From Podarcis bocagei (lineage: Eukaryota), in NCBI GenBank assembly GCA_964188305.1, contig OZ076886.1: DNA of 64,000 nucleotides, one strand, 5' to 3'. The notes under the pieces are model-generated. The model saw nothing but the letters and a program-made list of their open reading frames with translations. It made no database searches and was not told the origin of the DNA. Within the stretch, counting starts at the first letter, position 1; each line of letters opens with the position of its first letter. A program made the position numbers and the translations under genes. Positions 8,101-60,189 of the stretch are shown here, one piece after another.

Positions 8101-10084
8101 GAGTAAATAAAGTCCTCAACAGTTCCTTTTTGCTTATTTGTTTATGGAATATGATCTAGCAAATTAGGCCTACAGTTTTCATTACAAATACAATGTAAAT
8201 GAAAATGAAAATTCATATTTTGGTCTCAATAATCTACCCCTGCATATATACTTGACATTATGTTTATCTTCCTCCTTTCTGTATACATATGGAGAACTGA
8301 AAACAGCTCCAAAAGGCTTGAATCAGTTGAAACAATGAAGATTAAGATCTCTTTGATTGCAATGAGCACACTGCAAAGTACTGTATTTCTTGTATCAGTA
8401 AAGACAACATGTTAGTTAGACAATAAACTTCAGAGTTGAAATTTTCATTCACAGAGTGAGGGCATGTGGTTCTTCTCCATTTTAAAGAGGAATCCCTCCT
8501 TTGGGGCATGGGAAAGTGGAACAAACAGTTTCAGGAAACACTAGCCAAGCCATAAAAGGTATGCTTTGATATTTTTTTTGCAAATTTGCTGGCTCCTGCA
8601 AGTCACAAAGCAACAAGCCTTAGTCCATTAGTATGACAGGTAGTGTTCTTACTAACAACTGCTTTTTACTCCCCCTGACAAATGTGCTCTGTGCCATGGT
8701 TGACGTTTGTGTAGTAATCAGGACTGATGGATAGGGACGCCAATGCTGCCGAAAGTGCCCCCCGATTTAATGTGAGCGATTTGTCAAATGTGTTGCGATT
8801 GCATTGCTGTCAGGCACAGCCAGGAAAGCACTTTGTCATATTTCCACCAAGCAAGGTCACTTTGGCAGGGGATAGAAGGTCCCACCAATGAAATTTTCAT
8901 GTTTATTGGTGATGTGCATGGCCTACTTTCAAAACTTGTTTATTTTCTATTAAATAGCCATTTCAAGTCTCCTCTGAGAAGCTTCTTTTGTTAGAAACAT
9001 CCGTAAGAAGTTTTTTTGGGGGGGGTTTTAGATAAAAGGCCATTGGAATAAATATACATTTGGAACATTCAAATGTAAGGAAGTGCACATTACCATTTCC
9101 ACTGAAAGAAGGTGGTTTACATGAGATGTAAGAACTCTACTTATAACCTGATTCTTTAAAAAGTGTTGGGAACACTCAAAATGTTATGAATCCTAAACAT
9201 ATGGGATAAGTGAGAAGAAAAAATACATCAGTCAAGGCATTGGATACAAATGGCCAATAATTATTCTATATTTTAAACAGGGAATAGAAGAGTCATAACA
9301 TTCAACAAATGCACTCTATCAAATTCCACCATTTCAATTAACAGTTAATGTTATAAAGCTATACTTCGGGCAAATTAGCAAAATGTGAAAAAAATATTTT
9401 AGTTCCTAGAAAGCTCCAGGAGGTATTACCACTGGAAAACTGAACAATATTTTCAACTGGCTGGTAGCCTTTTCTGACAACATCCCAGGACAGCTCTAGT
9501 TTTGAGTAATTATGCACTGCTATCAATGAAAATAGGATAACTATATGTACATCCAATTGACAGGATCATAGTGAAGGTCAATAACTTGTTTTCATCTGCA
9601 GCACCTGATCCAGCAAGGGATACATGCATGGAAGACTGCTTTTGCATCCTTCTGTTGCTATCCTTATACAGACTGGGATATTACTCTGCATTACATATAC
9701 TGTATTATCAAGGGCTGGTCCTGCGTCTACTGAAGCAGCATCACTTACTGAGGGAAGGAGAATCAAGCCATTAATGACCCAAAGCAAAGGTGTAGGGCTA
9801 TACTTAAACTAAAGCCTCTAATTTTGTCAAAGTACTTTAAGGATTCCGTTCATTTGTCATGTGCCATACTTTCTCCATTTCATCCTCCTTACCAGAGGCT
9901 ATGGTATGGAAGAAGCAATAACATTTCAGTGCACGTACCGTAATTGCTGCACTTACAGAGTTGGGAACTTGAAAACTTGTTATGTGAGCTACCATGTCAT
10001 TATGCACAATTATTTTACATGAGACTTCCAAATGAGCCATTGTTAATGGGGACTTATAAGACAGACTCACCAATCTCGTTAGAA

Positions 10085-23986: not shown

Positions 23987-24174
23987 NNNNNNNNNNNNNN
24001 NNNNNNNNNNNNNNNNNNNNNNNNNNNNNNNNNNNNNNNNNNNNNNNNNNNNNNNNNNNNNNNNNNNNNNNNNNNNNNNNNNNNNNNNNNNNNNNNNNNN
24101 NNNNNNNNNNNNNNNNNNNNNNNNNNNNNNNNNNNNNNNNNNNNNNNNNNNNNNNNNNNNNNNNNNNNNNNNNN
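23987..24174. other. Assembly gap (188 N)
   Basis: Run of N. Confidence 1.
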
Positions 24175-24837: not shown

Positions 24838-25317
24838 GTTTTCTCCGTAGGCAGCAGCAAAGCATACAGAGAGTAGGCGAATGGTACAGCTCCACTACAC
24901 CTTCTGAAACTGATCGTGGCTAGCAAGTCCCATTAATTCCAGTGGATCTACTCTAAACATGCCCAAGTACAGATGCAAACCTGTATGTTGTGGTTTCCTG
25001 GCTGCAGCATAAAGCAAGAAAGGCCATCCATGTTTTCCCTTCCCAGATTAATATTTCAATTCATAAGATAGTTTTGTCATTATCATAAGGTCCTGACTCC
25101 TAACTCTCATGGTCCTCAGAACTCCTTGCTCTCAAATTAGTTCAATAATATATAATGTCATGTTCAAACACTGCAGTGAATTGTTCATTTAAAGGATCCT
25201 ATGGAAATTAGGAGAAGACACAGGCATCCTTGATATGTGTGTTCCATCAACAAAATAGTCTCCCAAACACAACTGCTCAAACAGCTTGGCTCCCGAACAA
25301 ATCAGCTCTCGAACGCC

Positions 25318-25454
25318 GCAAACATGGTTTGCAAACATTTTTTGGAAACCGAACTTCTGACGCAGCTTCCACTTGACTGCAGGAAGCTCCTGCAGCCAAC
25401 TGGAGGCTGCGCCTTGGTTTTCAAATGGCTCTGGGAGTCTAATGGACTCCCAGA
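25318..25454. other. Cluster of inverted repeats / predicted structured element
   Basis: 24-bp arms 25361-25384 / 25388-25411, extended by 25341-25352 / 25414-25425. Perfect 10-bp stem 25430-25439 / 25445-25454. 6-bp stem GCAAAC-ATG-GTTTGC at 25318-25332. Confidence 0.8.
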
Positions 25455-28400
25455 ACATATTAAGTTCAACAGCCAAGGTACCATTGTACGTAATAAAATA
25501 TGACACGAAACAAGACCATTCAGCTGTTTGTGAGGCATATTTGGCAAATTTGCTGTAAACCTTTCTCAACATGGTTAGATAAGCATAAATTGTTAAAAAC
25601 AGATAACTTTAAATGCTTAACATAAGGTAATTTGTTAACTGAAAATATATATGAAAATGAAAAAAAAACAAGGCCGCCCACAGTGAAATGCCATGGCTGC
25701 CAAACTTGACATCAAGGACACCAGGAGCTGAGAAAGAAAACTGCACATATATATCCTTCATATTGCTTAAATGATCATCTCATTACCTTTTTACATTGCT
25801 CTATTAATTTTTTTAAAAGGCATGCAACTCCCTCTATTTCCTCAAGAGATGATATACTGCAATTATAGGACTTTTGTAGATTAATTGATGTAGATACTAC
25901 TGCTAAAATGGCCTGCCTTGTTGATTTAGATATTGGCAGGTTTAACAGAAGTGTATTCTATTGATTATCTGTTTACAGAACAATTAGGGTCATATCGTGT
26001 AAAGTGCTAATCACAACTCTTCCAACATTAGTGAGTTCTTGCCACTTTATTCCACTGAGCAGTAAATGCAGCATTTGCTGTCTGTAATAGCCAGTTTCAA
26101 AGATACTGCTAATATAGTTGAGGACTAAGAATTGAACCCATTACATTTTTATTTTAGGAAGGACTTTGGGAAATAGAAGGTGGCAACTACAATTATAACA
26201 CAACTTTTAACTAAGAAGATCTATCAACCAGTTTTAATTACATGTTGATTTAAAAAATGTTGTCTTTAATATATATCTATTTTTTCCAGGTTCATCATGT
26301 TTGGCACCATTCTATTTGGGAGACAACAGATTTATATCATACTTACTTGCCCTGGTTCTGATGACACAATGCTATCATCGATGTCCAACAACACAAGAAT
26401 CTGGATCGTAGAGCTGAGAAAGAATGATGCCTTCCCTGCACTACTCAGAATATCACTACAGAAATTCTGAATCTGATTATTTTTCTAAACGTGTGCTTTG
26501 CTGTCTCAAAAGCATGTCCATGAAATGAGGTTTTACCATGTTATTCTACAAAACTATTTTCTCAACATGTCAAGCGAGTTGAGCAAACTCACCCCCATTT
26601 ATTACACAAGGATGTGGCAAACTCCAGGTCAAAACCCTGCTCAGCCATGGAAGCCCTTTGTTAAGTCAGCTCAACCTATCACAAAGGGCTGTTGTAGCAT
26701 AAAATAGATAATGATACAATTGCATGCCCACTATGCCCATGAAATAAAGCAAATAAGAAATCAATTCAGTAGTGACATTTCCTACATACTCTATGGGTAG
26801 GTTTTCTAAATACTAAAAAGATCTTTCTCAACTTCTGTTATCCCAAAACTTGTTATCCCAACAATTTAACCCAATTAATTCTAAAAGCCAACTAAGAAGA
26901 AAAGTGTAAAAAAATAACAAGATACTGAACTATAAATTATAAGAATCTATGTTTCTGTAAAATTCTGTCTACAAATATGAACATTTATCAGGCACATCCC
27001 TAAAACAAATAGATTAAATTTATTTCTGTAACATGAACAGGTATTATTCTATTTCAGTATGGTTATTCTTAACTTCATTTTTTTAATAATTGCAGTATAT
27101 TTATTGCTTCTAAGATGAAGAGAACTAGTCTATGGACTCTCCAGGCCTCACTGAAAAAGCAGAAAAACTGCCCATTCCTTACATTCTACTGACCTCTAGA
27201 GACTGTGTGATTATATAAATATATATAGATATAGATATGCACACATTTGTGTATAATCATAAATGCTGGAGCAAAAGGATCTAAGCATACATTTACACAC
27301 TATAAATGTGAAGTAACACACACACATTTTATTGTTTCCTAAATACACTTAGGCAAGCCAACACTTATTTCTTTTCTATATTGGCAGCAATGTGAGACTA
27401 TTATGGGAAGCATGTGAGTTCAGCATATCTTACATGTTCCAAAGTGGGAGCTAAGCATTATATTGTTGAATTGTTTAGAAAGTTATTTGACTTTACTCAC
27501 AATTCAAATTATGTTTCACACTATTAAGAATTAAAGTATTCTTATATTGTATTAAATATCATTACAAAGTATGAAATATTCTCTGAATAAAATGAATGCA
27601 TGTGTGATATATAACAAGTGGGTGTCAGTGCTTTTTGGAAATGGTAAGATACTAGTTTCTGCGCTGATGCTTTGATGGTATCTGAGGAAATACCCTCCCC
27701 AGTGTGATATCAGTTATTGACCTAAGAAAAATGGTAAGATGCGACAAGTAAGAGATTCGATGGCATGCCCATAAGAAAATCTCACCAAAGTGAAGTTTGA
27801 TACCCATAAATATTTGGGAATGTAGGTCAGATTATATTTCTACCCTTGTACTAAACAACAGACTATATTTCTACCCCTGTGTTCCCACATACATATGGTA
27901 CGTCTTTATATATGACAAATTATATAGATGGAATTTTTCGATTAAAATGCATTAGAGATAATTTCTGTTGATGCAAATGATATGAGTGCAAATTCTGAAC
28001 ACTAGCAAGTCTCATCAATAAATTTCCACTGCAAGGCTCTGCAATCTTACCAATGCTTTGTTCAGCACTGATAAAAACACCAGTACAACATGAGGAAACA
28101 AAAATCATTCATAGGATTTTTTTGCGGTTAAAATAACAGGTGCAGACATTGTATAAGGCTGACATCCATTAGTTCTGGGTTTCATAATACTTCACTTTGC
28201 ATCAGGTTGTTACAGCATTTTACATCATACTGAGCACTGTAATGCATGATGTAAATTTTACATGTCCTATAAAAAGTGGTGAGATTCATACAGAAGTTTT
28301 AGTGAGAGTAGTACAAATTGAAAATATTAATTGAATCTTAAAACCCTTAAACAACACCCAATTTGGATGTCCAAACCCTTCGCAAACACACAGACATTCC

Positions 28401-31400: not shown

Positions 31401-32555
31401 AATATATCTAGACCTTAGGGGAAAGGAGGGGCAGAAAAAGAATGCATCAACTGCAGATAGAATAATACAGTAGTCTATCAAGTTGGGAGTAGTCTTACAC
31501 TAAAAACTATTTTACACACAAACAAACACACTGCAAAATACAGATAATGACTTTAAGCAAGGACTTCCAAACTGCTAAACACCCTGGCAGCTGTGAACTT
31601 TAAAAAGCAATTAAACAGCACGCGACTGTTAAATTTAATTGTGATATTACTTTCAGCCCTTCTATCCTACCTATGCTCTTCCCTTTAAAAAAAATTAAGG
31701 GCCTAACTATGAAAACCAGGGCTGGTGTATGGTACATAATTGCATTTCCCATTCACCAATCCAAAGTTCAGACCTTCTGACTGATAATTAGCTTCTTTCT
31801 GTGTAGCTGTTATACAGGAAGTCCTTTATTATAATCCAGGTGCACTTGTAGGCAGCACTTTCAGAGTTAACTCCATTTGACAGCTGACATTAAACTACTA
31901 TTCTAATGTGGTGATTGCTTACTAAATCTGGATACTATTTAGGTAGTTTGGTAACCCGTTTCACAGAAGATGATTCTTGGTGCCTATTTATTACATGCTT
32001 TGTGTCTACAGCATGCAATGGACTGCATAACACTTTGGAAGGGCTCTCCTCATTTAACAGCGATGCTGGACAAACATAGCATTGCCACCATCTAGCCTCA
32101 ACTGACCAAGCACAGTTAGATCAAATCCCTACCGGAAAGCACTAAAGATTAATTGTGCTACAAACGGCAGAATGTCTTCTACCTGCAAGGTTGCAAGCTG
32201 AGGAACTGGAATTGCACCTTGAGATTTCCTGAAGCACTGAATTTAACCTTCTGCCAAAGTCCTGCCTTTCACTAGAGCAGCATTTGTGTTCTGTCCACAC
32301 TGAATATAAAAAAGCAAAGAAAAGCATTCCTTGCAAATGCAGCTGCCACACAAGCCCATTTGCAATTGAATCCGTATCACGCTCCAATTCATCAACATTA
32401 CTACAGGTACTTAACATCACAAACAAAAGAAAGCCCGCACAAGATCCTTGCCATCTGCCACTAAAGATGCCTTCCTTGGGTGCGAAATGATTAAAATCTA
32501 CAGCTTGGATTAAGCGACTCCACCAAACCCTCCGATGCAGGCAGGCACTTCTTAC

Positions 32556-32601
32556 CTGCCTCGGTGGAAGCCTTCCTTCCCTTGTTAGCAGTATGAAGCA
32601 T
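32556..32601 (-). CDS. TENM2: Coding part of an alternative (internal-promoter) N-terminal exon, probably of teneurin-2; encodes MLHTANKGRKASTEA + first base of G
   Basis: Minus strand reads ATG CTT CAT ACT GCT AAC AAG GGA AGG AAG GCT TCC ACC GAG GCA G|GTAAGAAG. The phase-1 donor is strong, there is a purine at -3 (GAGATG), and an in-frame TAA lies upstream at 32671-32673. The peptide matches my recollection of the TENM2 short-isoform start MLHAANKGRKPSAEAG, which joins the phase-1 exon G-RPIPP. Identity is from memory, not from a search. No other TENM2 exon was seen in the window. Confidence 0.72.
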
Positions 32602-33300
32602 CTCTAGCCTTCCCAGTCCTTGGCACCGATCGCAGATTGCACGGCTAAGTCCCTTTTTCCGAGAAAATTCTTATCGAAAGTGATTAGTTTTTGTTGTCCT
32701 TTTTAAGTCCCTCCTGCGGGAAGGAGCAGGGGAGCAATGTGACGCCACCTATTAATCTTTTGCAAGAGTGAAAAGGCAGAAAAGGAGCGCTCGATCAAAC
32801 TGAGCTTCACACATGACTAAAACTCGCCCGAGAGGCTGCTAGCTCTGGCTTAAAGCACCACTAGGCGTGAGTGTAAGAACAGAGAAGAGGGGAGAGTCAA
32901 TGGAATGTGACAACGTATGTGCATCAAAGACAAGAAAAAGAGAGAGAACAATGGGGGAGAGAAAGAGAGAGGCAGAGCAGAGCAGAATAAGCTGGAAAGC
33001 AAGACGGAGGAGTTTTAAGGAGAGCTCTTGTAGAATAAGGCAAAGGCGTCTAGCATCTTCTGTTTACCTCTCACTGAGCATGACATCCTGCCTCCCTCAT
33101 ATTCAGCAGCACATTCTTCTGTCTCTTAGGTTTGAAAACGGAGCCAGAGTCACCATGTGTGCTGCTCTCACCTCACTGTCATTTCCCTGTGCCCGGGAAG
33201 CATGCACGACAACAATTCATCCTGGAATACATTTACATACAATTTTAGTTCACGTATTCATTTGAACTGCCTCGACACCTCCCTCTAAAAGTGAACTGCT
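32602..33300 (-). promoter_or_regulatory. 5' leader and putative internal promoter of the MLHTANK exon
   Basis: Local CpG retention well above the window background (many CG in 32480-32870). CRE-like TGACGCCA at 32740-32747, M-box/E-box GTCATGTG (minus) at 32810-32817, and a long pyrimidine-rich tract on the minus strand at 32870-33000. No TEs. The TSS cannot be determined from sequence. Confidence 0.55.
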
Positions 33301-33774
33301 AATTTCTACCTCAATTTACAATGGAGTTTAACTGGCAGATGGAACTCTACTTATAACTACTGACAAACTGCCACTGGTAAACAAAAGCCTGAACAAATGC
33401 TTAATGCTACTAATTGAATTTGCACTGTAAAAAGAAGGGGGTGGGGGAGAGAAAACCATTATCACTGCTGAATCTGTGCTTCAAAAGGAAAGTATGATAG
33501 ACGTTCCCCTCTGTTCACACTGTTATTTTTACACTGAAATAAAGTGGTGGTGGTGGGGAGTTGTGATCAAGAACTAACAATATGCCAAATTAGCCAGCCA
33601 TTAGATTGGTTTTAGAAATAGGAGATACAGTATGATTGAGAATTTAATCTGAGAACGATATTTAGAATTTCGGTTTTGAACCATAAACTGCATCCCCAAA
33701 TATATTGAATTTATATTTGATGTTCAGCACATTCCTATACCTATTGCTCACATTGATATGTTTTATTTACCAAC

Positions 33775-35554: not shown

Positions 35555-36060
35555 CTACTCTCAAAAACAGGAGAGGACTAACTCTCCTGGCTTCCTTTCC
35601 TGGTTGTTCCTTGTCACAGTTGTCTTCTATTTTAGCCACATTACAAACCAAACTTCTTGTGATGGCGAGCAAGAACACCACCATTTGCTCTTCCAATGCA
35701 AGGTATATCTTTTCAATTCCTGGGCACTCAGTTTAATTTTCTGTCATCAGAAAAGTCTTTTCCTGAAGGTTTATCACTGTAGCACTTCTCTAAATCAATA
35801 ATGAGTTGTCATTTATCATAAATATGTCAATTCCAAAATGGACATTGGGAGCTTTCAAATGAACTATGTTCCCAAACTCATCCTCAAATTCACTTGGCCT
35901 AAACAAAAGATAGATGCACAGACAAAACTCTGTAGGTAACCTGTGCCGAGGAGGTTCTACTGTCTTCTCATATTTAAAACTACGTATACCTTTAGATTGT
36001 TCCGTCAGTATCGGAAGGCTTGCTGAAACCTACCAATCTAGCATGACTATTATTTCAACA

Positions 36061-36440
36061 GGGACGCAGGTGGCGCTGTGGTCTAAACCACTAAGCCTCT
36101 TGGGCTTGCTGATTGGAATGTTGGCAGTTCGAATCCACGCAATGGGATGAGTTCCCTTTGCTCTATCCCAGCTTCTGCCAACCTAGCAGTACGAAAGCAC
36201 ACCAGTGCAAGTAGATAAATAGGTAACACTACGATGGGAAGCTAAATGGTGCTTCCGTGTGCTCTGGCAATAGTCACAGTGTCCCATTGCACCAAAAGTG
36301 GTTTAATCATGCTGGCCACATGACTTAGAAAGCGGTCTATGGACAAACGCTGGCTCCCTCAGCGTGAAAAGCAAGATGAGCGTCTCACCCCATAGTCACC
36401 TTTGACTGGACTGGTCTTTACCTTTACCTTTTACCTTTAC
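36061..36440 (+). mobile_element. Full-length Sauria (Squam3-type) SINE
   Basis: Pol III A box GGTGGCGCTGTGG, B box GCAGTTCGAATCC, (TTTACC)n tail, TSD TATTTCAACA at 36051-36060 and 36441-36450. Confidence 0.93.
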
Positions 36441-37869
36441 TATTTCAACAGTATAAAAATTTACTTGGACAAGTAAATTATCTCTGTGAGGAAAGAGAAT
36501 ATGAACTGCCCAAAAGAGACTATGTGCTTAGAGTTACATGAATATATACAAGTTATTTTTCTTCTTAAAATGTGCTTGGAGTTAAATTTTCTCCACCATC
36601 ATTACTGAGCCATGCAAAAGTCATCCCACAGCACATTAGAATAACTATTACAGAGCAAAATTTTGTAATAATGACATTTTCCATGGAAATGTAAATAATT
36701 GGTTTCAAGCCCAAGCCTCATGTAAGTTTCCCTAGCTCTAGGGAAACAACTAATCAAAGGTTTCTCTCACCATCACCTTAGAAAAGCCAATTATAAGGCA
36801 AGTTTAACACTTAGGAGAAAGACCTCCTGCTTCCTTCTCTTACAAACTAGGCCCTCTCATTTCTTTAGCCTTTCTATAGTCTGAAGCTGTGATCCCAAAT
36901 GCCCAAAATTTAGGAGATTAGGGGTATCAAACATGTAATTTTCCAAGAGTGCAGGGAAATGTACTAGTGGTAAGACAGCACAAATTTCTGTTAGTTACTC
37001 AACCTCAGTGCTGACCAGTGAACCAGATTTGTGGGCAAAATGTACTTTTGCAATGCCCAACAGCATAATATCTGATTATTATTATTCAAGTGGAGTAGTG
37101 ACTGCATGTGACAGTGTAAGAAGTGGCATTTATTCACAGCAATAGATAGATATTGAGCCCTGGCTGCATACTTGAAAGCCAAATTTAACTGTCTGACTAC
37201 GCAAAGTACATGGCCCCAGGTAAATGCCGTGAAGTACAGATTCAGTGATTTAAACTTAATTCTCCCCCTGAAGATGGGAAATCCCAGAATCCCCAGCTAG
37301 TTCTTTAAAACTTAGTGAATCATCCTGTAATAGGCACTAAGACCACAATAACGTAGGTTTCACATTATTTTTTCATTTATCTTTCAGTCAAGGTTCTTAA
37401 CAGCTTGCACAGTATATTTTTTAACTGGAGAGGAGATGAGGGCAGAAAAGAAATGCCACTTAATCTGAATACTGACTCATTTGAGGAATGCAGAAATCGT
37501 ATGCCTGCACCCAAAACAAAGGTGCCAAGGGCTTGCATTTTATTCAAAAGTGTATGTGGCTGTATCTAATTGTGACATAAGGCTCTTTGATCCAACAGAG
37601 GACACATTCTCCCTTTGTTCTGAAGCCCCCTATACCACTTCGAATACTGTTCCAAAGCATCAACCAACTCTCTGTAGCAGATGTGGGAGGGTGTTGCAGA
37701 AGGGAGGAGGAATCAACAAAAATGGCTTTCTGCTCTCACTATTTAGAATTGTAAGCCATCACTGAATAAGAGAGCCTTGGGTTAAACAGAGGAACATAAC
37801 TAGATACAAAGCTTTTGTAAAAAAGAATAAATTTAAAAATATTACTTAATTGACTATTTAATTCTCTAT

Positions 37870-43827: not shown

Positions 43828-44662
43828 AAAGAACTGGAACAAAACTAACAAAATGAATTTCAATAGGAACCAATGTCAGGTTCTACACTTAGGCAGGAAG
43901 AACCAGCTGAACAACTATAAGATAGGGGACACCTTTACTAGGATCTAGGGATCTTAGGAGACTACACCCTTAACATGAGTCAACAGTGTGATGCAGCAGC
44001 AAAAAAAGCTAATGTTATTCTAGGCTGCATTAATAGAAGTATAGTGTCCTGATCAAGGGAAGTAATAAGGTAAAGGGACCCCTGACCATTAGGTCCAGTC
44101 GTGACTGACTCTGGGGATGTGGCGCTCATCTCGCTTTATTGACCGAGGGAGCCAGCATACAGCTTCCGGGTCATGTGGCCAGCATGACTAAGCCACTTCT
44201 GGCGAACCAGAGCAGCGCACGGAAACGCCGTTTACCTTCCCACTGGAGCAGTACCTATTTATCTACTTTCACTTTGACGTGCTTTTGAACTGCTAGGTTG
44301 GCAGGAGCAGGGACCAAACAACGGGAGCTGACCCCATCGTGGGAATTCGAACCACCGACCTTCTGATCGGGCAAGCCCTAGGTTGTATTCTGCCTTGGTC
44401 AGGCTACACCTAAAATACTGTGTCCAGTTCTGGGTGCCAAAATTTAAGAAGTATATTGACAAGCTGCCAGATGAGCAGAGGAAGGCAACCAAGATGATCA
44501 AGGGTCTGGAAACCAAGCTATAGAAGGAATTGTTGAGGAAACTGAGCATGTTTAGCTTGACAAAGAAGATACTGAGAGGAGATATGATAGCCTCCTTCAA
44601 ATACTTAAAAGGGCTGTCACATGGAGGATGGAGCAAGCTTGTTTTCTCCTTCTCTGCAGGCT
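43828..44662 (+). mobile_element. CR1 LINE ORF2 fragment interrupted by a SINE
   Basis: Encodes [40 protein letters not shown], and after the [26 protein letters not shown]. It is colinear with the CR1 at 58.5-59.1 kb. Confidence 0.9.
44068..44382 (-). mobile_element. 5'-truncated Sauria SINE nested in CR1
   Basis: Near-identical to 48669-49003; B box (TTCGAACC on +) present, A box missing. Confidence 0.92.
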
Positions 44663-48252: not shown

Positions 48253-48580
48253 TGTAGTAGTCACTTCTCCCCTCCACGGAGAAAGCCTTTATTTATGTGG
48301 TCTGTTTAAGGCAGGGGAGGCAGGTGGACTTTAGTATGGAGGAATGGGGACTAGAAATCAATAAGGAGGTGCACTGGTCTTTCTGGTTTCTATAGCAGAG
48401 GTTTTCTGAGGTTTCCCACGTTCACAGGGGGCATCATCTTTCCTGAAGCAGGCCCCATCATTAAAAGTGCCTAAGAAACAGCTTCTAACAGAAAAAAGTG
48501 GAATCCTTGCCCTGGTCCTTATCATGAAGGGGAAAGAAGCAGGTTGCGATTCTGACTCAGATTCAGATGGATCTGTGACA
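48253..48580 (-). mobile_element. Possible solo LTR
   Basis: Minus strand begins TGTCACAG and ends CTACTACA, with AATAAA about 35 nt before the end; GC-richer than the flanks. No TSD recognised. Confidence 0.35.
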
Positions 48581-48668
48581 GTGCTCACTGCTTTATATCT
48601 ATCTCACTCTCAATCTTATCAATACCAATTTAGTGCTTAAGCAATAACAGGGATCATACCTAAGTATA

Positions 48669-49003
48669 GAGGTAAAGATAAAGGGACCCCTGACCATTAG
48701 GTCCAGTCGTGGCCGACTCTGGGGTTGCGGCGCTCATCTCGCTTTATTGGCCAAGGGAGCAGCATACAGCTTCCGGGTCATGTGGCCATCATGACTAAGC
48801 CACTTCTGGTGAACCAGAACAGCACACAGAAATGCCGTTTACCTTCCTGCCGGAGCGGTACCTATTTATCTACTTGCACTTTGTGCTTTCGAACTGCTAG
48901 GTTGGCAGGAGCAGGGACCGAGCAATAGGAGCACACTCCATCACGGGGATTTGAACCGCCAACCTTCTGATCGGCAAACCCTAGACTCTGTGGTTTAACC
49001 CTT
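48669..49003 (-). mobile_element. Sauria SINE, slightly 5'-truncated
   Basis: 12-bp TSD TACCTAAGTATA at 48657-48668 and 49004-49015; GGTAAA-type tail; B box. Confidence 0.95.
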
Positions 49004-49322
49004 TACCTAAGTATACTTACTATGAAAATAAATTTAACTTCTCTAATATATTTTAATCTGTTTTATACTGTGCAAACATGAAACAAACACTCACACACCT
49101 TTGAGACCAAAGAAATACTAAATAATACATCAAAGCATACATGGATGCCAACAATAATTTTGTAGTCTGCTTTCTTTACCGAGGCAATGAGTCAGTGTAA
49201 CTTTGTCCTGCTTGAAACTCATTTATGATTCCGAGCAGCAAAGTAATAGTTACCTCATATGAAGAGTGAAAATAAGATAACATATCAAGTGACAATAAAA
49301 CACAAACTTTGGTTTGTGGTGA

Positions 49323-55247: not shown

Positions 55248-55422
55248 NNNNNNNNNNNNNNNNNNNNNNNNNNNNNNNNNNNNNNNNNNNNNNNNNNNNN
55301 NNNNNNNNNNNNNNNNNNNNNNNNNNNNNNNNNNNNNNNNNNNNNNNNNNNNNNNNNNNNNNNNNNNNNNNNNNNNNNNNNNNNNNNNNNNNNNNNNNNN
55401 NNNNNNNNNNNNNNNNNNNNNN
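55248..55422. other. Assembly gap (175 N)
   Basis: Run of N. Confidence 1.
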
Positions 55423-58494: not shown

Positions 58495-59113
58495 ATAGAA
58501 TAGAATAGAATCATAGAATCATAGAATCATAGAGTTGGAAGAGACCACAAGGGCCATCGAGTCCAACCCCCTGCCAAGCAGGAAACACCATCAGAGCACT
58601 CCTGACATATGGTTGTCAAGCCTCTGCTTAAAGACCTCCAAAGTAGGAGACTCCACCACACTCCTTGGCAGCAAATTCCACTGTCGAACAGCTCTTACTG
58701 TCAGGAAGTTCTTCCTAATGTTTAGGTGGAATCTTCTTTCTTGTAGTTTGGATCCATTGCTCCGTGTTCGCTTCTCTGGAGCAGCAGAAAACAACCTTTC
58801 TCCCTCCTCTATGTGACATCCTTTTATATATTTGAACATGGCTATCATATCACCCCTTAACCTCCTCTTCTCCAGGCTAAACATGCCCAGCTCCCTTAGC
58901 CGTTCCTCATAAGGCATCGTTTCCAGGCCTTTGACCATTTTGGTTGCCCTCCTCTGGACACGTTCCAGTTTGTCAGTGTCCTTCTTGAATTGTGGTGCCC
59001 AGAACTGGACACAGTACTCCAGGTGTGGTCTGACCAGAGCAGAATACAGTGGCACTATTACTTCCCTTGATCTAGATGCTATACTCCTATTGATGCAGCC
59101 CAGAATTGCATTG
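58495..59113 (-). mobile_element. Young 5'-truncated CR1 LINE (ORF2 C-terminus, 3' UTR, (ATTCTATG)n tail)
   Basis: Uninterrupted frame [40 protein letters not shown]...[11 protein letters not shown]...[15 protein letters not shown]...FKQRLD (ORF 58591-59172; the first ~20 aa come from flanking DNA). The octamer tail reads CATAGAAT repeats on +. Confidence 0.97.
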
Positions 59114-60189
59114 TTGGAGAATCCTAGACAGCCACAGTGTGCGGGGGAAAGTAATGGGCATGTAGCTGTCAATTATTTACTGCAGTTGATCACCCAACTG
59201 AAGAAGCAAGGAAGTTTTAAATGGGAAACTGACTTGCCCTTTTCTCCATGTGCTCATCTGTAGTTTAAAAACAACAACATTTCTTTCTGGCCTGCATTAC
59301 GGCCGTCTTGGATTACATCATTGGTATTATCTGCCGTATTGCACCAATGGTTGGCCAGTTGTTTGGGAATTTGTTAACCAATTGAAATGTATTGCACCAG
59401 AATATCACTGCCAAATCTGCAAAATTCTTTGATATAGGGGTTCCTCCAATGTATTTTACACAGCCAATATGTTTCCTATGTAACTACAACAGCTGTGCTT
59501 CCTTCAGAAAATATATTAGGGTTATAGATGTTATATGCCCAACTGGAGTTTGGGGATGCTGCTGAGTGTCTTGAATGACGTGTGAAGGAGACATTAGAAT
59601 AGAAAGCTAAAAGAAAGGTGTGGACTGGAATTCCGAATTTTCTCCTCCCCCCTTTTAAATAGCAACAATCATGCTTGGAAGCCAAACAGCGAAGCTTTGG
59701 AAGCTGAGGATGTGTTGGGCTGTATCCAATCTTTTCTTTCTGCTTGCACAACAGACTTCCACTTGTGCAATAGAACTTCCCCCTCCTTTCCAAACCCTTA
59801 GGCACCCTCATTTTCCTGAGGGTTTGGGGCCCCCTTGGGGCATATTTGGGGGGGTACACAGATAGGAGTTGATAGAGAAGTCCCATTGTGTGAGTGAAAT
59901 GCCACTCATGCAGCATGGGATACCAACCAACATTTGGTAAGCCAAACAAGGTGTCAATGTACCTGTAGGAAGAATCAAAGTTCCTAAGGAAAAGGTTGTG
60001 AAGGAAGGAGAACTGGATAGATATTAACAAAGGGACCTGACAAAGTAACAGGTGGTTCTGGCAAGGAAGCTTCAATTGAAAGAGAAGGGAACCATGAAGT
60101 TCAGAAAACCTGGGGGGGGGGGGAATTGAAGGAAAACTCACAACTGCCCTGAGAACAGGAAAGGGATATTTGGGAAACTGGGAGAATAA

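Follow-up and report, generated by a model that had tools for sequence, protein, structure and literature searches.

The question raised by this locus is whether a short open reading frame of the lizard Podarcis bocagei, lying on the minus strand at 32556..32601 of the 64,000-nt stretch of DNA analysed here (the window), is a genuine start exon and, if so, to which gene it belongs. Teneurins are linked to the cytoskeleton through their intracellular domain, which in some paralogues can be released. The reading favoured here, to which a probability of roughly 0.65 is assigned, is that the lizard carries an alternative 5′ coding exon of ancient origin, which most likely corresponds to the alternative start known in teneurin-2 (TENM2) as 'exon 2B'.

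An exon of this kind has a precedent. Human teneurin-2 exon 2B, located between exons 2 and 3 and possessing its own start codon, has been described (Tucker et al. 2012, Mol Biol Evol, PMC3278476), so that the preliminary description, which presented the lizard exon as a hidden one, cannot be upheld as a claim of novelty. The ESTs that contain human exon 2B were found never to include exons 1–2, and an alternative start was proposed; the exon was likened to C. elegans ten-1 and was not found in chicken (PMC3278476).

The coding part of the lizard exon opens with an ATG at 32601–32599, comprises 15 codons (MLHTANKGRKASTEA) and ends in phase 1 with the first base of a Gly codon, the G at 32556. 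The 5′ splice site that follows it (GTAAGAAGTG, 32546..32555, minus strand) is invariant in all six taxa compared; its GTAAGA begins at 32555, and the junction CAG|GTAAGA agrees with the consensus at 8/9 positions. The base at −3 of the lizard ATG is a purine, and an in-frame TAA is present further upstream on the same strand (32671..32673). The elements listed in the preliminary description, namely the ATG, the 15 codons, the phase-1 donor and the upstream in-frame stop, were all recovered exactly from the window sequence. The lizard TAA is not the stop used in the other taxa: owing to a 1-nt indel at −3, their upstream sequence is read in another frame, which contains an in-frame stop of its own. 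A strict pattern scan of both strands, requiring a purine at −3, an upstream stop and MAG|GTRAG 24–150 nt past the ATG, returned three start-exon-like layouts in the window; the layout by itself is therefore at chance level and carries no weight, and it is conservation across taxa that sets the exon beyond chance.

Orthologous sequences were reached in two ways. A degenerate DNA pattern combining the peptide with the donor, which matches once in the window and in 0 of 100 shuffles, identified two contigs in a metagenome collection (L001 and L002) that derive from one species, are 99.6 % identical and both contain MLHTANKGRKPSTEAG followed by GTAAGAAGTG. Protein queries began with the read-through ORF of L002 (97 aa) and continued with an alignment of four such ORFs; they recovered read-through genomic ORFs on the Logan contigs L003, L004, L006 and L007, as well as the alligator protein KYO39267.1; the Alligator mississippiensis locus is referred to below as L005. 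The run from which L003 originates (SRR29089750) is whole-genome sequencing of the thrush Catharus gracilirostris, according to an eLife paper (PMC12068868). The contigs L002, L004, L006 and L007 match L003, as well as one another, over 84–100 % of their overlap at 77–84 % identity, whereas they can be aligned with alligator over 33–60 % and with the lizard over 11–29 %; because of this end-to-end alignment with the thrush and the shorter alignments with alligator and lizard, they are taken for birds of several lineages. A human origin of L001–L007 was rejected, given that L005 is alligator, L003 is thrush and the remainder align end to end with L003. The two metagenome contigs (JGI Ga0065711_1004362 and Ga0181612_176180) are bird-like host DNA, and their CpG observed/expected ratio at this locus is 0.52–0.57, compared with 0.14–0.40 in alligator and the other bird-like contigs; CG is found in L002 where L004 has CA or TG at 79 sites, and the reverse at 8. 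When the 59-aa stop-to-stop ORF of the lizard served as query, a word search gave a blank, although the proteins P0001–P0003 share six consecutive 5-mers with it and fit the length range; the word index missed them, and a blank on such a short conserved stretch is consequently no evidence of absence.

The comparison of these sequences argues strongly for an exon. The 46-nt ORF is identical at 46/46 positions among alligator and five bird-like contigs, Catharus gracilirostris included, even though elsewhere the alligator and bird-like sequences show 77–84 % identity. The lizard ORF matches them at 43/46 positions, the differences being one non-synonymous change (Ala/Pro) and two synonymous changes at third positions. 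Among the five non-lizard taxa, variable columns number 0/46 in the ORF, 0/10 in the donor, 13/79 (16 %) in the 79 nt just upstream (offsets −74 to 0), 16/250 in the core block further upstream and 274/487 (56 %) in the following intron. The ORF and donor together (0/56) are thus more conserved than both the adjacent leader (Fisher p = 7e-4) and the intron (p = 3e-19), whereas the ORF and the core do not differ (p = 0.15). In the six-taxon alignment, read in 25-nt intervals, the lizard shares 87–100 % identity with the other taxa from −325 to −75, with at least 91 % in all but one interval, then 75–100 % from −74 to about +50 and approximately 60 % thereafter. The conserved stretch shared by lizard, alligator and birds, put overall at 90–100 % from −325 to +55, covers about 375 bases and ends just past the donor, the drop occurring some 10 nt after it. 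Indels of 1 nt at −3 and of 4 nt at about intron +15 flank the ORF and donor, with none between.

The pattern is that predicted of an exon with its 3′ end at the donor 32556|32555 (L005:10046|10047 in alligator), and the data support strong purifying selection on the exon. The preliminary description of an exon accords with this, as its ATG, open frame and phase-1 donor are conserved in a squamate, a crocodilian and birds. A chance ORF in neutral DNA is ruled out by the conservation data, and on these comparative grounds the 46-base start piece with its splice signal is a real, ancient exon. The nature of the constraint is a separate matter: the frame, the ATG and the donor are kept in all six taxa, and three lizard changes are too few to gauge a synonymous bias. 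Synonymous sites are equally frozen, and the constraint is therefore not attributable to the peptide alone, nor is it specifically of the protein-coding kind.

The exon lies in the largest (32169..33525, minus strand; blastn 73.6 % over 1435 nt against L005:9069-10442) of 19 collinear non-coding blocks shared between the window (172–45076) and the alligator locus, and no intra-window repeat overlaps it. Such a dense array of conserved blocks is typical of what is expected inside a giant intron of a developmental gene, and in this respect it speaks for the assignment to TENM2. This setting lends some colour to a reading in which the whole block is a conserved non-coding element, for instance an enhancer, that happens to contain an ORF and a GTAAGA and has preserved them along with everything else. 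Pattern matching by itself finds the layout of ATG, ORF and donor at three places in the window, and the sequence upstream is as conserved as the ORF (16/250 against 0/46, p = 0.15), both of which suit such an element. An element of this kind would not, however, be expected to stop exactly at a consensus donor, to hold an ORF and donor more conserved than the 79 nt immediately upstream (p = 7e-4), or to combine indels that avoid the ORF with a leader free of upstream ATGs; moreover, the peptide ascribed to annotated isoforms matches the database variants P0006 and P0007. Preservation of a chance ORF within a non-coding element is thus considered very improbable. The strongest of the 19 blocks lies elsewhere, at 8529–8968 (87.5 % over 440 nt against L005:47432-47847); it has stops in all minus-strand frames and is likely an enhancer. 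A multi-hairpin element at 25318–25454 is absent from the blocks conserved with alligator, and the 127-aa ORF overlapping it (25189–25572, minus strand) has no Pfam match.

The base composition around the exon was also compared with that of the remainder of the window. The interval 32301–32900 has the highest CpG count of the window, with 16–17 CpG per 500 bp and an observed/expected ratio of 0.59–0.63 compared with 0.18 for the window as a whole, and it falls short of the classical island criteria. Three patches, at 35.8–36.5, 43.8–44.7 and 48.4–49.3 kb, are similarly rich in CpG, but these are intra-window repeats, while 32169–33525 is not repeated. The earlier statement that the exon lies in the only CpG-enriched, transposon-free part of the sequence is therefore roughly right as regards the highest count and the lack of repetition, and needs qualifying as regards the three other patches. 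No Pfam match was obtained for the ORFs at 58594–59172 (minus strand), 44332–44520, 35800–36500 and 48400–49300. The first of these has at least four diverged copies in the alligator locus (36–56 % amino acid identity) and is therefore a transposon protein. Runs of N occupy 23987–24174 (188 bases) and 55248–55422 (175 bases) of the window.

Whether the exon is a first exon depends on how the sequence upstream of the ATG is read. The near-invariant core (32677..32926, minus strand, −325 to −75) is a candidate core promoter with 5′ leader or, alternatively, a conserved upstream intron. In all six taxa at least 212 nt preceding the start codon are free of ATG, and the first 330 nt of the intron contain 3–10 ATGs. 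An upstream ORF of 20 codons (MCEAQFDRALLFCLFTLAKD, then a stop; 32752..32814, minus strand) shares the frame of the main ATG (frame 0), and both its ATG and its stop are intact in 6/6 taxa (lizard, alligator and four bird-like contigs). Its first 15 codons are invariant, the last five show three synonymous and one or two non-synonymous changes, and its conservation does not exceed that of the surrounding non-ORF sequence. If transcription were to start upstream of 32814, this ORF would be included in the mRNA, where its translation is putative. The predicted RNA fold of the leader and core is no more stable than that of shuffled sequences (z = +1.35), and no Rfam family was detected anywhere in the window.

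A polypyrimidine tract ending in CAG|G (32714..32740, minus strand; CAG at 32716–32714) lies 112 nt upstream of the ATG, shows a single C/T difference across the six taxa and is, as judged from sequence alone, a possible 3′ splice site, from which an exon would start at 32713. This conserved acceptor-like site places the internal promoter and the status of a first exon in question, as the exon may belong to TENM2 and yet be internal, with transcripts initiated at a more distant upstream site, the CAG|G acting as its acceptor, the near-invariant 200 nt upstream forming a regulatory intron and no promoter being located here. The strength and near-invariance of the tract are in keeping with such an arrangement, as is the lack of ATGs in the 112-nt stretch between the acceptor-like site and the start codon (32602..32713, minus strand). 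It is also well established that the upstream introns of regulated alternative exons are typically highly conserved. Nevertheless, conservation at this locus is one-sided, collapsing 10 nt past the donor, which is more in keeping with a first exon than with a cassette exon; a setting rich in CpG and free of repeats suits a promoter, and human ESTs beginning in exon 2B lack exon 1 or 2 (PMC3278476). These three observations favour a first exon, and an internal position is regarded as unlikely, although it retains more credit than the non-coding element considered above.

The only annotated gene found to use the exon is that encoding KYO39267.1 (hypothetical protein Y1Q_0004890, Alligator mississippiensis), a 67-aa protein of three exons, the first coding exon of which is the orthologue of the lizard exon, with the same ATG, 15 codons and phase-1 donor. 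This independent annotation supports the reality of the exon. In the model, exon 1 is joined as G|AT to exon 2, which lies 82 kb downstream between a clean acceptor (polypyrimidine-AG) and a GTAAGG donor, and exon 3 follows about 4 kb beyond exon 2, approximately 87 kb downstream. Exons 2 and 3 (L005:92315-92399 and about 96754-96816) have canonical splice sites and similarity to nothing found, and they could be either real alternative terminal exons or prediction artefacts. The model differs from what is proposed for the lizard exon in that it continues into two exons without teneurin similarity. It could accordingly be imagined that the exon opens not a teneurin isoform but a separate transcript, nested within a large intron, that encodes a small protein or acts as a non-coding RNA; the canonical splice sites of the 67-aa model speak for this, and the constraint on synonymous sites suggests a function at the DNA or RNA level. 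On the other side, KYO39267.1 forms a single-member cluster, has no Pfam domain and finds relatives only through the shared exon, as is typical of an ab initio model, and the published human exon 2B behaves as would be expected of the lizard exon (PMC3278476). A nested transcript is therefore judged improbable, and KYO39267.1 is probably a prediction that recognized a good start exon and then mis-joined it.

The preferred assignment, to teneurin-2, draws on the encoded peptide. Mammalian TENM2 isoforms presumably begin with a similar N-terminus followed by RPIPP, from which the lizard differs at 3 of 16 positions. The phase-1 donor and the peptide of the lizard exon agree with these presumed isoforms. 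A search of representative proteins returned two short ORFs, P0006 (MLHTANKGRKPSAEAG..., 29 aa) and P0007 (...MLHAANKGRKPSAETG...), that carry MLH(T/A)ANKGRKPSAE(A/T)G, a near match to the presumed mammalian peptide; they entered the comparison as peptides, and P0007 may stem from mammalian or human DNA that contaminates a metagenome. Both hold the variant residues A4, P11 and A13 presumed for mammals, so that the peptide invoked in the preliminary description exists in nature and is probably a real mammalian one, while its TENM2 label is presumptive.

Human exon 2B and the lizard exon are alike in being short, in having a start codon of their own and in the prospect of replacing the product of exons 1–2. 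They differ in their reported distribution, as human exon 2B was not found in chicken, whereas intact copies of the lizard-type exon are present in alligator, a songbird and further bird-like contigs. The link to TENM2, which rests on the presumed mammalian peptide and on the human exon described by Tucker et al. (2012; PMC3278476), is probably correct.

Two further teneurins offer precedents. Alternative promoters in vertebrate teneurins would be exemplified by human teneurin-1, albeit a different paralogue, for which work by Beckmann et al. in 2011 is said to have revealed an alternate promoter bound by EMX2. In C. elegans, according to the summaries of Drabikowski et al. (2005) given in PMC6297184 and PMC6510184, long and short ten-1 isoforms arise from two promoters. 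The nematode gene serves as an analogy only, in that one teneurin gene has two starts and isoforms that, as summarized there, differ just in the length of the intracellular domain; it has no known sequence relationship to the lizard exon, and the intracellular domain of the nematode short form is far more truncated. In the literature searched for a TENM2 alternative promoter, nothing specific was found beyond Tucker et al. (2012; PMC3278476), and no mention was found of the peptide strings or of the alligator locus tag.

None of the searches or comparisons returned a result that names TENM2. No Pfam domain, Ten_N included, was detected in 20 ORFs of at least 90 aa in the window (13 of 17 on the minus strand and 7 on the plus strand), and no other recognizable teneurin exon was seen in the window or, in alligator, within 97 kb downstream and 10 kb upstream. 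The minus-strand RPIPP exon anticipated by the preliminary description did not appear, the motif being absent from every frame of the window and of 97 kb downstream in alligator (107-kb locus). A spliced protein with the N-terminus of the exon was not encountered among proteins of 33–170 aa or among 1.84 billion cluster representatives, and a 30-column profile run against the representatives returned the genomic read-through ORFs and the alligator model and no long teneurin-like protein. As the word search covers proteins of 0.55–1.75 times the query length and the representative library holds one protein per 50 % cluster, an isoform of 2,600 residues that differs at its N-terminus would be invisible to both, and the absence of a spliced product is weak evidence.

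Assuming that the exon is the alternative start of teneurin-2, transcription would begin within the near-invariant block of 250 nt or upstream of it, and the AUG at 32601, the first after the 212-nt ATG-free leader, would open the 15-codon frame. The phase-1 donor at 32556|32555 would then be spliced to an exon further downstream that encodes part of the intracellular domain, and the predicted product would be a teneurin-2 in which 16 residues replace the N-terminal part encoded by canonical exons 1–2, with the membrane anchor and the ectodomain unchanged. The shorter intracellular domain joined to an intact anchor and ectodomain follows from the TENM2 assignment, which is assumed here.

What is added to the published exon is that the exon is letter-perfect in birds and alligator and that a near-invariant element of 250 nt terminates in it; the novelty is modest. 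Since the human exon has been in print since 2011 and may already be included in current genome annotations, the practical gain is likewise modest. The 250 nt upstream are nonetheless so extremely conserved that they mark a regulatory element worth dissecting, and if the exon is what it is proposed to be, the statement that birds lack it would need correcting.

It is tentatively suggested, at somewhat less than even odds, that the exon and the near-invariant 250-nt block together constitute an internal teneurin-2 start module. Its age would be at least that of the last ancestor shared by lizards, crocodilians and birds, and probably that of the amniotes as a whole, and it would be present in birds despite the 2012 report on chicken. 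Such a module may possess its own layer of control, in the form of the 20-codon upstream ORF and the otherwise ATG-free leader, which would set the amount of the short form. The intracellular domain of teneurin-2 carries EB-binding motifs that are needed for inhibitory synapse formation (PMC10284602). If the proposed assignment is correct, an alternative start that leaves out the sequence encoded by exons 1–2 would provide neurons with another version of this adhesion receptor, wired differently from the first, and the nearly letter-perfect retention of the exon in a lizard, an alligator and a songbird would mean that the short form is no mammalian oddity.
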